IMG/VR virus record: IMGVR_UViG_3300046804_003469
Coordinates: 1 to 64,000 of that record
Length of the DNA: 64,000 nt
Reading direction: 5' to 3' (one strand)
Part shown: in pieces, positions 21,404 through 59,561 of the stretch
How the letters are laid out: each line of letters starts with the position of its first letter
How positions within the stretch are numbered: position 1 is the stretch's first letter
The notes under the pieces: model-generated
The model's database searches: none
Seen by the model: only the letters and a program-made list of their open reading frames with translations
Told to the model about the DNA's origin: nothing
Program-made: the position numbers and the translations under genes

Positions 21404-22369
21404 ATGAAACTTAAAAATTTTATTGCTATTGGTCTGGTTACTGCTCCTGTTGCTGCACTTGCTGGATCTTCTCTGAATGGTGCTGGTGCCACCTTCCCAT
21501 CACCAATTTATCAACGTTGGTTCCAAGATTATGCACGAACTTCTGGGAGTAGGGTTAATTATCAGTCCGTTGGTTCTGGTGCTGGTGTTCGCCAATTCCT
21601 TGCGGGAACAGTTGATTTCGCAGCAAGCGATGAACCAATCAAACCCGCAGAGGCAGCAAAAGTGAAACGTGGTGTCGTTCAAATTCCTATGGTAGGTGGA
21701 ACGATTGCTATTGCCTATAATAAAACTGGATGTACTCTGAAACTCTCTCAGAAACAAACTGTGGATATTTTTGCTGGACGTATTAAGGATTGGAAACAAC
21801 TTCCTAACTGTGGTAATGGTACTATTCGTGTGGTACATCGTGCTGATGCTTCTGGTACTACCTTTGCTTTCACTAACTCTCTTGAATCATTTGGTGGTTG
21901 GACTTATGGTGTTGCTAAATCCGTAAACTGGCCTACTGGTATTGCTTCTAAGGGTAACGAAGGTGTTGCTGGTACGATCAAAAACACTCCTGGTTCTATC
22001 GGTTATGTAAATACTGGATTTGTTCGTGCCAACAAACTCCAAGCAGCAGCAATTCAAAACAAGGCAGGTAAGTTCATTCTTCCTTCTGCTTCCACTGGTT
22101 CTGCTGCTCTGAATAGTATTACTCTAGATACAAACCTTGCAGGTGAAAATCCTAATCCTTCTGGTGTAAATGCATATCCCATTTCTACTCTGACATGGAT
22201 TCTTGCCTATAAGACTGGTAATGGTTCTAAGGCAGGTGATATTCGCTCTGCTCTAAACTATGCTCTAAGTTCTAAGGCACAGATGATTGCTGATGACCTT
22301 GGATATGTTCCTCTTGCTGGAAGTGTTCTAAACAAAGCACGTCTTGCAGTTGGTCGTATCGGTCAGTAA
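21404..22369 (+). CDS. pstS: Phosphate ABC transporter periplasmic binding protein
   Basis: GAGATFP, YQSVGSGAG, DFAASD, RADASGTT, KGNEGV, YPISTLTW. Confidence 0.95.
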   Translation: MKLKNFIAIGLVTAPVAALAGSSLNGAGATFPSPIYQRWFQDYARTSGSRVNYQSVGSGAGVRQFLAGTVDFAASDEPIKPAEAAKVKRGVVQIPMVGGTIAIAYNKTGCTLKLSQKQTVDIFAGRIKDWKQLPNCGNGTIRVVHRADASGTTFAFTNSLESFGGWTYGVAKSVNWPTGIASKGNEGVAGTIKNTPGSIGYVNTGFVRANKLQAAAIQNKAGKFILPSASTGSAALNSITLDTNLAGENPNPSGVNAYPISTLTWILAYKTGNGSKAGDIRSALNYALSSKAQMIADDLGYVPLAGSVLNKARLAVGRIGQ

Positions 22370-22399
22370 ATTCCGACAAAATAAGTATCAGATAATACC

Positions 22400-22437
22400 A
22401 AGGGGTGCTTGACACCTCTTTATTTTTCCTATATAAT
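22400..22437 (+). promoter_or_regulatory. Terminator hairpin overlapping a consensus sigma70 promoter for hli
   Basis: AAGGGGTG-cttga-CACCTCTT plus T-rich tail; TTGACA 22409, 17 nt, TATAAT 22432. Confidence 0.8.
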
Positions 22438-22464
22438 TGTGTAACAATTCGTAATAAAACGAAA

Positions 22465-22674
22465 ATGACTGTAACAAAAAATGAATTTGGACAAATGAAT
22501 ATGTGGGCAAAAGAACCTTCGATGTATATGACGAAGGAAGATCTTGAACGTTATGGTATTGAACCTTATGCAGAAAAAGCGGAGAAAATGAATGGACGTT
22601 GGGCAATGCTCGGCATTATTGCTGGTGCTATTTCTTATGCTCTCACTGGTAAACTTTTCTTCGGAGTCTTCTGA
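22465..22674 (+). CDS. hli: High-light inducible protein with N-terminal extension
   Basis: AEKMNGRWAMLG chlorophyll-binding helix. Confidence 0.9.
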   Translation: MTVTKNEFGQMNMWAKEPSMYMTKEDLERYGIEPYAEKAEKMNGRWAMLGIIAGAISYALTGKLFFGVF

Positions 22675-22679
22675 TTGAT

Positions 22680-22844
22680 ATGAGTGCTGGAATGCTCGGG
22701 CAATTTAATCTTGCCCTTCAAGAACTTGTAGAATCAGGTGCCTGGGATAAAGATGATGAACTTAAAGTTTGCATCGCAGGCACCTTACCTAAAGATAAAT
22801 TTATTGTCATTCAAAACATTACTAAAAGAGGAGAAAAAAAATGA
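22680..22844 (+). CDS. Hypothetical 54-aa protein between the two hli genes (not in ORF track)
   Basis: MSAGMLGQFNLALQELVESGAWDKDDELKVCIAG..; ATGA overlap with next gene. Confidence 0.65.
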   Translation: MSAGMLGQFNLALQELVESGAWDKDDELKVCIAGTLPKDKFIVIQNITKRGEKK

Positions 22845-22960
22845 AAAATCTTTTTACTGAGAAAGCAGAACGTATTAATGGTTGGGCTGCTATGATTGGA
22901 ATTATTGCTGGTATGGGTTCTTATCTTGCCACTGGTCAACTGATTCCTGGTGTATTCTGA
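22841..22960 (+). CDS. hli: High-light inducible protein, 39 aa (not in ORF track)
   Basis: MKNLFTEKAERINGWAAMIGIIAGMGSYLATGQLIPGVF; GAGGAG RBS. Confidence 0.9.
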   Translation: MKNLFTEKAERINGWAAMIGIIAGMGSYLATGQLIPGVF

Positions 22961-22971
22961 TGGAGGTTACT

Positions 22972-23496
22972 ATGCGTAAAGAAGGTTATCAAATTGCTCA
23001 AGTTGAATTTGTATTTCGTGAATCTGGCGAGTTTGTAACTCGTACAACTGAAGATCTTTTCAATGGAAAACGTGTTGTCATTTTTAGCCTGCCTGGTGCT
23101 TTCACTCCTACTTGCAGTGCCTATCAGTTACCTGGATTCGAAGAGAAATACAACGACTTTCTTGGTCTCGGCATCGACGATATTTATTGCGTCTCTGTTA
23201 ATGACGGGTTTGTGATGAACGCCTGGGCACAAGATCAAAACATTAAAAACGTAAAACTTATTCCCGATGGAAATGCTTATTTCACCCGTTCGATGGGTAT
23301 GCTCGTTCGTAAATCAAACCTTGGGTTCGGTGAGCGCAGTTGGCGTTACGCTGCTGTGGTGAATAACGGAATCATCGAAAAACTTTTTGTTGAGGATGGA
23401 CAACGTGATAATGCAGATTCTGATCCATATGAGGTAACAACTCCAGAAAATGTTTTAAATTATCTAACACTTTCACAAAAACCTGTTGCAGTTTAA
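22972..23496 (+). CDS. Type II (Prx5-like) peroxiredoxin
   Basis: LPGAFTPTCS, SVNDGFVMNAW, DGNAYFT, RSWRYA; GGAGG RBS before ATG 22972. Confidence 0.9.
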   Translation: MRKEGYQIAQVEFVFRESGEFVTRTTEDLFNGKRVVIFSLPGAFTPTCSAYQLPGFEEKYNDFLGLGIDDIYCVSVNDGFVMNAWAQDQNIKNVKLIPDGNAYFTRSMGMLVRKSNLGFGERSWRYAAVVNNGIIEKLFVEDGQRDNADSDPYEVTTPENVLNYLTLSQKPVAV

Positions 23497-23561: not shown

Positions 23562-24233
23562 ATGACATTAGATCTTCATAACTTTTTTAAGTATTATGAT
23601 GATAGTAATTCAAACCATGTAGCAGCAGTTCAATGGTTAGAGGATAATCTTCCTGCTGAATATATGGATGACTCTGAAACTGAATGGGTTAGAATTTTTA
23701 GAACTAAACCTCCAACTCCAGCAGTATTAGATGTTCCCTACTTTAATCAAGTAGATAACTATAGAGATGCACATAGAACTTGTAACTCTTCATCGTGTGC
23801 TATGTGTCTTGCTTTCCTGAAACCAGGAAGCATCAAAGGTGATGATGAATATATTAAAAAAGTGTTCGCAATTGGAGATACTACTGACCATGCTGTACAG
23901 ACAAAAGTTCTGGCAGGTTATGGTGTTAAGTCACACTTTAGTTACAATCTTTCTTTTGCTGATATTGATAAGAGTCTTGATGCTGGGAAACCTGTCGTTA
24001 TTGGCATCTTACACAGGGGTCCTCTTTCTGCTCCTACTGGCGGTCACATGGTTGTAGTGATTGGTAAGACACCAGATGGTAAAGGTTATTACTGTAATGA
24101 TCCATATGGTTCATGTAATGATAATTACACTGGCCCAGTAACAAACGGTAAGAAAACCGTTTATACCAAAGCAATGCTCAAGTATCGTTGGTGCCCAGGT
24201 GGCAATGACGGTTGGGGTAGAATTTTCGACTGA
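23562..24233 (+). CDS. C39-like cysteine peptidase with an N-terminal domain shared with the next gene; probable cell-wall hydrolase
   Basis: VPYFNQ, CNSSSCAM, GHMVVVIG, NDPYG (Cys-His-Asp). Confidence 0.8.
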   Translation: MTLDLHNFFKYYDDSNSNHVAAVQWLEDNLPAEYMDDSETEWVRIFRTKPPTPAVLDVPYFNQVDNYRDAHRTCNSSSCAMCLAFLKPGSIKGDDEYIKKVFAIGDTTDHAVQTKVLAGYGVKSHFSYNLSFADIDKSLDAGKPVVIGILHRGPLSAPTGGHMVVVIGKTPDGKGYYCNDPYGSCNDNYTGPVTNGKKTVYTKAMLKYRWCPGGNDGWGRIFD

Positions 24234-24246
24234 TAGGAGAACAATC

Positions 24247-24915
24247 ATGGCAAAGGTAGATTTACACAACTTTTTTAAATATTATGATGACAAAAATCCT
24301 AATCATGTAAAGGCGGTTCAATGGATGGAAGATCATCTTCCCATCAAATACTTAGAAGATAACTCTGAATGGGCAGAAATTTTTAGAGGAAAAAAGACTA
24401 GTGCTGCACCAGCCCCTGCCGCTGCTGCAGCTCCAGTCGTAGGTGGTGATGATGTACCTATGATGGGCATCAAATTAATCAAAGAGTTTGAAGGATGTAG
24501 ATTAAATGCTTATCCTGATCCTCTTTCTGGTGGACTTCCTATTACAATTGGGTGGGGTTGTACTCGTAAGAAGGATGGATCTCCATTCCATCTTGGAGAT
24601 ACAATCACTCAAGCAGAAGCAGACGAACTTTTAATTGAAGAATGCAAACATAATTTCCTTCCATCACTCCGTAAAATTCCACATTGGAATGAAATGAGTG
24701 ATGGTAAAAGAGGGGCCCTATTATCTTTTGCATATAATTTGGGTGCTGGATTTTACGGTGGTGATAATTTTAATACTATTACTAAACGTTTGAAAAATAA
24801 AGAGTGGGATTTAGTTCCCGATGCATTGTATCTCTACAGAAATCCTGGTTCAAATGTAGAAGCAGGACTTGCACGTAGAAGAAAGGCTGAAGGTGAATCT
24901 TGGAAAAAAGGTTAA
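24247..24915 (+). CDS. GH24 lysozyme/endolysin with shared N-terminal domain and Ala/Pro linker
   Basis: IKEFEG..AYPD..TIGWG, SFAYNLG, GLARRR.AE; AGGAG RBS before ATG 24247. Confidence 0.9.
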   Translation: MAKVDLHNFFKYYDDKNPNHVKAVQWMEDHLPIKYLEDNSEWAEIFRGKKTSAAPAPAAAAAPVVGGDDVPMMGIKLIKEFEGCRLNAYPDPLSGGLPITIGWGCTRKKDGSPFHLGDTITQAEADELLIEECKHNFLPSLRKIPHWNEMSDGKRGALLSFAYNLGAGFYGGDNFNTITKRLKNKEWDLVPDALYLYRNPGSNVEAGLARRRKAEGESWKKG

Positions 24916-24933: not shown

Positions 24934-25272
24934 ATGGAAAACGACAAAAAGGCAAAATGTATGAGTACTGTTATTCGTGTCGCTATTCTTAGTTGGTCTG
25001 CTGCTCTTCTTACAGCATCATATGCGGGTCTTCTTTCAAAGATGGATCCTACCTTTATTGCAACTGTTTTCACTGCTTCCGCTGCTACCTTTGGTATTAA
25101 CACAATGAAAAAAGGTGGAGATGATGATGAGAAAAAAGTAGAACCACGTAGAGAAGAAGTAGTTGTAGAAGCACCTCCAGAACCACCAGCTCCAGAAACT
25201 CTTGAAGCAAGAGTAGAAGCATTGGAGGAAAAGGTTGAAGAGGGTGAAGGATTTGTTCAACCTCGTACATGA
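24934..25272 (+). CDS. Two-TM membrane protein with charged tail; holin candidate
   Basis: Two hydrophobic segments, acidic Pro-rich tail, directly after endolysin. Confidence 0.5.
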   Translation: MENDKKAKCMSTVIRVAILSWSAALLTASYAGLLSKMDPTFIATVFTASAATFGINTMKKGGDDDEKKVEPRREEVVVEAPPEPPAPETLEARVEALEEKVEEGEGFVQPRT

Positions 25273-25276
25273 TAAA

Positions 25277-25489
25277 ATGAAGTATATAACTTTAACATTT
25301 TCTGTGATAAGTTTGGGCATCAGTACCGCTATAGGTATTGGTGCCTATGTAACTTATCAGAAAGCACAAAAGATTCTTGATAATCCAGAAGCATTTGTTG
25401 GTGCCGTTGTAGAAAAGCAAGTTAACAAAGCATTTGAAAAATTACCAGTTCCAAAACTAAATACCAAAGAGTTCAAATTACCTTTCTAA
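25277..25489 (+). CDS. Single-TM small protein
   Basis: MKYITLTFSVISLGISTAIGIGAYV followed by a helical region. Confidence 0.6.
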   Translation: MKYITLTFSVISLGISTAIGIGAYVTYQKAQKILDNPEAFVGAVVEKQVNKAFEKLPVPKLNTKEFKLPF

Positions 25490-59034: not shown

Positions 59035-59106
59035 GCGGATGTAACTCAACGGTAGAGTGCCATCCTTCCAAGTTGGAAGTTGCGGGTTCGAATCCCGTCA
59101 TCCGCT
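59035..59106 (+). tRNA. trnG: tRNA-Gly(TCC)
   Basis: GCGGATG/CATCCGC acceptor stem, loop CT-TCC-AA, GCGGG-TTCGAAT-CCCGT; no encoded CCA. Confidence 0.9.
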
Positions 59107-59487: not shown

Positions 59488-59561
59488 GCCTTTGTAGCTC
59501 AGTTGGATAGAGCAGGGCTTTTGTAAAGCTCAGGTCGCAAGTTCAAGTCTTGTCAGGGGCT
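59488..59561 (+). tRNA. trnT: tRNA-Thr(TGT)
   Basis: GCCTTTG/CAGGGGC acceptor stem, GGGCT-TTTGTAA-AGCTC, GCAAG-TTCAAGT-CTTGT. Confidence 0.9.

Follow-up and report, generated by a model that had tools for sequence, protein, structure and literature searches.

A lysozyme (endolysin) gene of a T4-like cyanophage carries what looks like a genuine -1 ribosomal frameshift signal of the E. coli dnaX kind, which should release the 51-residue N-terminal domain as a separate protein alongside the full enzyme, and related phages use the same device in mirror-image gene layouts. Considered in this one sequence the signal is weak evidence, since the slippery heptamer occurs at chance frequency and the hairpin that follows it is unremarkable for its composition. 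Comparison with relatives, however, makes the evidence strong. Although this evidence is comparative and does not extend to the proteins themselves, the reading that the cassette is functional is favored with a probability of about 0.8.

The endolysin gene and its predicted frameshift signal

The gene lies within a window of 64,000 nucleotides (IMG/VR record IMGVR_UViG_3300046804_003469, positions 1 to 64,000), which is part of a 215-kb contig of a T4-like cyanophage (family Kyanoviridae). The nearest named relatives are the metagenome-assembled Synechococcus phages DSL-LC02 and DSL-LC03, at about 80% nt identity. Host-like genes (pstS, hli and peroxiredoxin), two lysis enzymes in tandem, a two-segment membrane protein and a nuclease are present around the site. 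The features of the locus are given in Table 1.

Table 1. Features of the endolysin locus; positions are those of the window.
Position	Strand	Feature	Basis
23562-24233	+	Adjacent paralogous lysis enzyme: the same N-domain fused to a C39-like cysteine peptidase; no slippery site (boundary reads ...FRTKPPT)	Pfam PF13529, E 3e-15; conserved upstream of the lysozyme gene in relatives
24247-24915	+	Endolysin gene; 0-frame product of 222 aa (24.8 kDa): N-domain, linker, GH24 lysozyme	ORF list; Pfam PF00959 over residues 79-215, E 7e-22 (78.5 bits against a cutoff of 22.3); AlphaFold mean pLDDT 87
24247-24390	+	Coding region of the N-terminal domain (residues 1-48), a predicted small helical bundle; 64% identity with the domain of the adjacent C39-like peptidase	AlphaFold model of the domain alone, pLDDT 92, three helices; alignments
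24390-24396	+	Slippery heptamer A_AAA_AAG, from 0-frame codons 48-50 (GGA AAA AAG)	Sequence, in the X_XXY_YYZ register
24396-24401	+	-1 frame codon GAC and stop TAG, ending the shifted product at 51 aa (6.26 kDa; ...RGKKD)	Sequence
24397-24402	+	6-nt spacer between heptamer and hairpin	Length constant in type I, I', II and III relatives
24397-24453	+	Coding region of the Ala/Pro-rich disordered linker (residues 51-69)	pLDDT below 50 for residues 53-67; variable length and sequence in homologues
24403-24431	+	Putative stimulatory hairpin: 6-bp outer stem, C-C mismatch, 4-bp inner stem, 7-nt loop	-14.6 kcal/mol alone; -21.6 for the 66-nt context
24454-24912	+	GH24 (T4/lambda-type) lysozyme catalytic domain	Pfam PF00959; confident model from about residue 70
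24934-25272	+	DUF6450 protein with two hydrophobic segments; candidate holin (inferred)	Pfam PF20048, E 2e-18; conserved downstream of the enzyme gene in type I, II and III loci

The heptamer, hairpin and -1 stop described in a first-pass annotation of the sequence are all present as it described them. In the AlphaFold model the folded N-domain ends at about residue 48, and the site is therefore exactly at the domain boundary. In the single sequence, the signal barely exceeds chance. AAAAAAG occurs 47 times in the window against 46 expected. The fold has z = -1.06 against dinucleotide shuffles, with 24 of 200 shuffles folding as well, and for this sequence p = 0.23 against synonymous recodes and 0.035 against codon permutation. 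Even so, among the 12 in-frame A_AAA_AAG sites in long open frames of the window, this is the only one with a stable downstream structure (-17.4 against 0 to -6.3 kcal/mol). Two further elements were sought. Pairing of the hairpin loop with a downstream GTAGG, suggested in the first-pass annotation, would form a pseudoknot and can be drawn in this sequence, but GTAGG is present in only 1 of 59 homologues, and the pseudoknot is not supported. Likewise, no conserved Shine-Dalgarno-like enhancer or internal ribosome-binding site was found upstream of the heptamer; AGAGGA is not conserved because the Arg codon varies (AGA, AGG, CGC, CGT and CGG), and no start codon follows.

Conservation in close homologues

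A scan of IMG/VR returned 80 loci containing 59 distinct gene sequences (type I) at 76-84% nt identity to the window gene. Within these, GGA is kept in 59/59, AAA in 59/59 and AAG in 56/59. On a maximum-likelihood tree (total length 5.0) the three codons show no synonymous change at all, while neighboring codons changed 4-20 times; the adjacent Arg codon changed synonymously 14 times among five codons, other conserved Gly codons 2-20 times and other Lys codons 2-15 times. Only 8 of 157 conserved degenerate codon columns are frozen, and three of these are the consecutive codons of the heptamer. The only departures are three non-synonymous ones, AGG twice and GAG once, and the three sequences that carry them fall in the one clade whose hairpin has decayed. 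The -1 stop lies one codon after the heptamer in 50 of 59 sequences, although the two residues encoded there vary (TS, SS, GN, TN, HS, NS, SN), and within 9-15 codons in the rest.

A 6-bp stem at a spacer of 5-7 nt is found in 49 of 59 homologues, against 28 expected under synonymous recoding. The outer stem varies in a compensatory way, with the variants GCUGCA/UGCAGC, GCGGCA/UGCCGC, GCGGCA/UGUCGC and GCGGUAAC/GUUGCCGC, and, in one homologue, GCUGGA/UCCAGC, which was produced by two amino-acid changes. RNAalifold on MAFFT alignments of the type I and type III sites gave no or poor consensus because the 3' arms shift with linker indels; per-sequence folds, a count of the named structure and recoding controls were used instead. 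On a structure-blind alignment the named helix is 84% paired, with a covariation score of 0.143 against 0.086 for shuffles (0 of 500) and at most 0.067 for slid controls. However, this covariation rests on only about three independent compensatory events, and GCN repeats also pair when slid by 3 nt (67-68% paired). The caution in the first-pass annotation that Ala/Pro linker codons form GC hairpins easily is also fair, since synonymously recoded linkers still form a 6-bp stem at the right spacing 47% of the time, against 83% observed, and the mean gain in stability over recodes is modest (-14.8 against -11.5 kcal/mol).

Relatives with split genes

An initial search of 5.8 billion proteins with the full-length query returned only relatives at 84% identity or more. 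A representative library and a search with the 50-residue N-domain alone, which could return only proteins of similar length, were needed to reach the informative relatives. The latter search found short stand-alone N-domain proteins (49 aa ending ...RKK, and 69-83 aa) that are common in metagenomes. Their loci have the same neighbors, the C39-like peptidase upstream and DUF6450 downstream, and show two further layouts in which the free N-domain is the 0-frame product.

In type II relatives (10 sequences), the 49-aa N-domain ORF ends AGA AAA AAG TAA or TAG, that is, the same heptamer at the same boundary with the 0-frame stop immediately after it. The -1 frame is open for 189-190 codons encoding a Ser/Ala/Gly/Pro-rich linker and a complete GH19-type endolysin. 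This enzyme matches solved endolysins (PDB 9ms7, E 1e-31; 4ok7, E 8e-14) from residue 16 of the -1 frame, well upstream of the only start codon, which gene callers use to call a truncated 149-aa ORF. The frame is under clear purifying selection, with differences by codon position of 406/249/1974 and 1787 synonymous against 452 non-synonymous codon differences. A complete enzyme can therefore be made only by a -1 shift on A_AAA_AAG. Sister sequences (type I', 7 sequences) have the GH19 enzyme fused in frame, keep the heptamer, and have a -1 stop (TAG or TGA) one codon later, just as in the window. On a tree of the enzyme domain, split and fused forms are interleaved, implying at least three switches.

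In type III relatives (22 sequences), the 0-frame ORF (69-83 aa) consists of the N-domain, a linker and a conserved CPHCGK(P/S)LGK tail, and it ends (C/T)TG GGA AAG TAA/TAG. This is the lambda G/GT heptamer, G_GGA_AAG, followed directly by a stop; the heptamer is invariant and the Leu codon before it is always G-ending. The GH24 lysozyme continues in the -1 frame for 166-172 codons, and a hairpin of -18 to -30 kcal/mol, with several different stem sequences, starts about 6 nt downstream. These hairpins are much more stable than synonymous recodes (-20.5 against -13.8, median p 0.005); for type II the values are -21.6 against -14.8. No alternative start codon for the lysozyme is conserved, and in 8 of 19 sequences the -1 frame is closed four codons upstream of the shift site, although some sequences do have an ATG, a GTG or an internal Met-Met, so that independent initiation is not excluded for every member. 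The type III genes also provide an internal control. Their N-domain boundary still often reads Arg-Gly-Lys-Lys, but it is spelled GGT/GGC AAG AAA and similar, or replaced by GNK, GKG or SKS, and never GGA AAA AAG. The first-pass annotation had held that Lys-Lys encoded by other codons in homologues would count against its reading. Such codons do occur, but only in the lineage that has moved the frameshift site downstream to G_GGA_AAG, so they corroborate the reading.

The N-terminal domain

The N-domain is attached to three kinds of wall-degrading enzyme and occurs in tandem in one relative. Searches for its function were uninformative: Pfam gave no hit, PHROGs gave only endolysin or unknown families, the ESM Atlas gave only lysozyme clusters with scores of 0.72 or less, and Foldseek found nothing in PDB and only cyanophage lysozymes in BFVD. 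N-domain-lysozyme fusions at 40-50% identity never had the heptamer and, as noted above, three of the 59 close relatives have lost it. The free domain is therefore not universally required.

Proposed mechanism

These comparisons support the core reading of the first-pass annotation, a dnaX-type cassette that frees the N-terminal domain beside the full lysozyme. In this model, a fraction of the ribosomes decoding AAA AAG (24391-24396) are held up by the hairpin, both Lys-tRNAs slip back one base onto A AAA AA, and these ribosomes read GAC and terminate at TAG, releasing the N-terminal helical domain on its own. The remaining ribosomes make the full N-domain-linker-GH24 lysozyme. The gene would thus deliver two products in a ratio set by the RNA signal. 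That shifting occurs in this gene is an inference, and the shiftiness of A_AAA_AAG is governed by the tRNA-Lys set of the host; the window itself encodes only tRNA-Gly(UCC) and tRNA-Thr(UGU). The free N-domain most likely works as a partner or competitor of the N-domains carried by the lysozyme and by the neighboring C39-like peptidase, which could mean assembly of a multi-subunit lysin or control of its targeting; this role is likewise inferred, and the scaffold or lysis timer proposed in the first-pass annotation remains a hypothesis.

Taken together, this phage group repeatedly couples a free N-domain and an N-domain-enzyme fusion through a -1 frameshift, in both possible polarities, with two heptamers and with two enzyme families. 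By inference, repeated switching between polarities is easiest to understand if the shift is fairly efficient, and the weaker hairpin in type I and the stronger ones in types II and III fit different required efficiencies.

Alternative explanations

The rival that survives best, though it is unlikely, is that the conserved A-run and hairpin form a translational pause or mRNA element, for example to aid co-translational folding or to control mRNA stability, with any frameshifting an unselected leak and the short product without a role. The position of the site exactly between a folded domain and a disordered linker, and the modest advantage of the type I hairpin over recodes, would fit this idea. 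However, a pause element needs neither the precise X_XXY_YYZ register nor an A in the third position of the preceding codon, which is GGA in 59/59 and AGA in 16/16 where Arg precedes. Nor does it need a nearby -1 stop. In addition, relatives express the free N-domain as their main 0-frame product, so the short protein is evidently useful.

Slightly less likely is coincidence, in which a Lys-Lys pair next to an Ala/Pro linker happens to give a slippery-looking heptamer, a GC hairpin and an out-of-frame stop, and only the full-length lysozyme is made in meaningful amounts. The chance frequency of the heptamer, the fold z-score and the behavior of recoded linkers are in its favor, and out-of-frame stops are frequent in this AT-rich genome. 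Nevertheless, coincidence cannot explain the absence of synonymous change at three consecutive codons, the avoidance of exactly these codons for the same amino acids in type III genes, or split genes that need the shift at the same heptamer.

RNA polymerase slippage on the A6 run is very doubtful as the source of the second product. Homopolymeric A runs can support transcriptional slippage, and Thermus dnaX uses it (PMC5009743), but six A's is short for efficient slippage, the conserved hairpin at a 6-nt spacing is a ribosomal feature, and type III relatives use G_GGA_AAG, which has no homopolymer run. No insertion or deletion at the heptamer was listed in contigs of two RNA libraries, but because assembled contigs of mixed populations drop rare variants this shows nothing for or against slippage. 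Finally, although the split genes are known only from metagenome assemblies, in which indels at A-runs are common errors, it is equally improbable that they are pseudogenes or assembly errors, since they recur in many samples with different stop codons (TAA, TAG) and diverged flanks, differ from fused forms after the A-run and not within it, show strong purifying selection in the downstream frame with indels in multiples of three, and in type III have no homopolymer.

Comparison with known systems

The mechanism is classical. E. coli dnaX (tau/gamma) uses the identical heptamer, a stem-loop about 6 nt downstream and a -1 stop one codon after the shift, and its shifted product is a truncated protein lacking the C-terminal domains, while the 0-frame gives the full-length protein (PMC5009743). 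The phage gene differs in having no conserved Shine-Dalgarno-like enhancer upstream, in encoding a lysis enzyme from which a 51-aa N-terminal module is released, and in having close relatives with the opposite layout, where the shift extends the product. In E. coli copA [CopA(Z)], a -1 shift followed by early termination also releases a small stand-alone N-terminal domain of a larger protein, a 70-aa product (PMC5009743), but the heptamer and stimulator differ, the gene is that of a cellular transporter, and the released domain has a known ligand (copper). The phage lambda G/GT tail assembly chaperone and IS3/IS911 OrfA/OrfAB are of the extension type, in which a -1 shift at G_GGA_AAG (lambda) or A_AAA_AAG (IS911) fuses a short 0-frame product to a downstream domain at a fixed ratio. 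This is exactly the layout of the type III and type II relatives, although the lambda and IS proteins are chaperones or transposases and the window gene itself is of the truncation type.

The closest functional analogy is the set of two-polypeptide endolysins made from one gene by internal translation starts (CTP1L, CD27L, LysIME-EF1/Lys170, phi2638A), in which the full-length enzyme and a free copy of its non-catalytic module associate (PMC4777826, PMC7098653, PMC12203907, PMC9430671). There the module is C-terminal, is made by an in-frame internal start, and occurs in phages of Gram-positive hosts. An N-terminal module cannot be freed that way; early termination by frameshift can do it.

A more tentative possibility, less likely than not, is that the lysis locus of these freshwater T4-like cyanophages works as a frameshift "toggle". 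In this case the shift would be efficient enough (tens of percent, perhaps near 1:1 as in dnaX) that single indels could flip the gene between full-length in frame 0 and full-length in frame -1 without loss of function. The free N-domain would be an obligatory subunit, assembling the glycosidase and the C39-like peptidase into a multi-enzyme lysin, a Gram-negative, frameshift-based counterpart of the multimeric endolysins of Gram-positive phages.

Implications for phage lysis

Programmed frameshifting in double-stranded DNA phages is known mainly from tail chaperones and capsid genes, and no report of it in an endolysin gene was found in full-text literature searches or in a comprehensive 2016 review (PMC5009743). 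Type II and III genes are currently called as a tiny hypothetical ORF plus a 5'-truncated or separate enzyme gene. If confirmed, the finding provides a rare natural series in which the same locus occurs in truncating and extending frameshift layouts, with two heptamers and two enzyme families, and thus a ready-made test of how recoding signals evolve and how indels at shifty sites are tolerated. It would also show that phages of Gram-negative-type hosts make two-component endolysins, by a different route from the internal starts used in Gram-positive phages, and would point to a small, abundant and uncharacterized N-terminal domain as a key player in cyanophage lysis.

Layout of the lysis genes in related phages

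In the type II layout, which is present in locus L088 and in L089-L091, L095, L099, L101, L102, L104, L106 and L108, a 49-aa N-domain ORF ends AGA AAA AAG TAA/TAG, and a complete GH19-type endolysin is readable only in the -1 frame. Gene callers instead annotate a truncated 149-aa ORF, which starts at an internal ATG. In the type III layout, present in locus L092 and also in L093, L094 and L175-L248, the N-domain protein carries a conserved CPHCGK(P/S)LGK tail and ends in G_GGA_AAG plus a stop. A strong hairpin follows, and the GH24 lysozyme lies in the -1 frame. The CxxC tail might bind metal. In type II and III loci, a small 45-48-aa ORF overlaps both the end of the C39-like peptidase gene and the start of the N-domain gene; this ORF has no family match and has no counterpart in the window.

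Other arrangements of these domains are also present. P0123, a relative of 271 aa from the representative library, contains two tandem copies of the N-domain in front of the lysozyme domain. In other cyanophages (S-CREM1, ACG-2014f and S-CRM01), the C39-like peptidase and the lysozyme are fused in one ORF, in either order. In S-CRM01 the lysozyme match falls in two pieces across two abutting genes, which may represent another recoding or annotation problem. In the case of S-PM2, the "putative lysin" is annotated as 72 aa, but an open frame of 136 aa that begins at an upstream TTG covers the whole lysozyme domain; the annotated start is probably wrong.

Coordinates of features in the window and in the loci of related phages
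Sequence	Position	Feature
L088	1852-2567	Type II layout
L088	1728-1865	Small overlapping ORF
L092	2501-3216	Type III layout
L092	2368-2514	Small overlapping ORF
L005 (S-CREM1)	1473-2654	Peptidase-lysozyme fusion (either order)
L006 (ACG-2014f)	1289-2506	Peptidase-lysozyme fusion (either order)
L087 (S-CRM01)	1387-2696	Peptidase-lysozyme fusion (either order); lysozyme match in two pieces across abutting genes 1387-1944 and 1944-2696
L003 (S-PM2)	2284-2694	Open frame from the TTG at 2284; annotated "putative lysin" 2476-2694
Window	21404-23496	Host-like auxiliary genes
Window	24855-24912	Last 20 or so codons of the lysozyme gene (alignment columns 203-221)
Window	24934-25272	DUF6450 protein
Window	25274-25489	Small single-pass membrane protein
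Window	59035-59106 and 59488-59561	tRNA-Gly(UCC) and tRNA-Thr(UGU)

Genomic context of the endolysin gene

Just upstream of the lysis genes in the window lies a block of host-like auxiliary genes, which encode the phosphate-binding protein PstS, two high-light-inducible proteins, and a peroxiredoxin. The phage also encodes two tRNAs, tRNA-Gly(UCC) and tRNA-Thr(UGU). Of these, tRNA-Gly(UCC) reads GGA, the codon that supplies the first A of the heptamer in the window gene and that is the P-site codon of G_GGA_AAG in the type III relatives.

Within the 59 homologues, the 3' end of the lysozyme gene has unusually few synonymous changes. This may reflect the presence of a ribosome-binding site or promoter for the downstream DUF6450 gene, or an RNA element. 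The DUF6450 protein itself has two hydrophobic segments and a charged tail, and its gene is followed by that of a small single-pass membrane protein. Both lie directly after the endolysin gene and are candidates for a holin and a lysis accessory protein.
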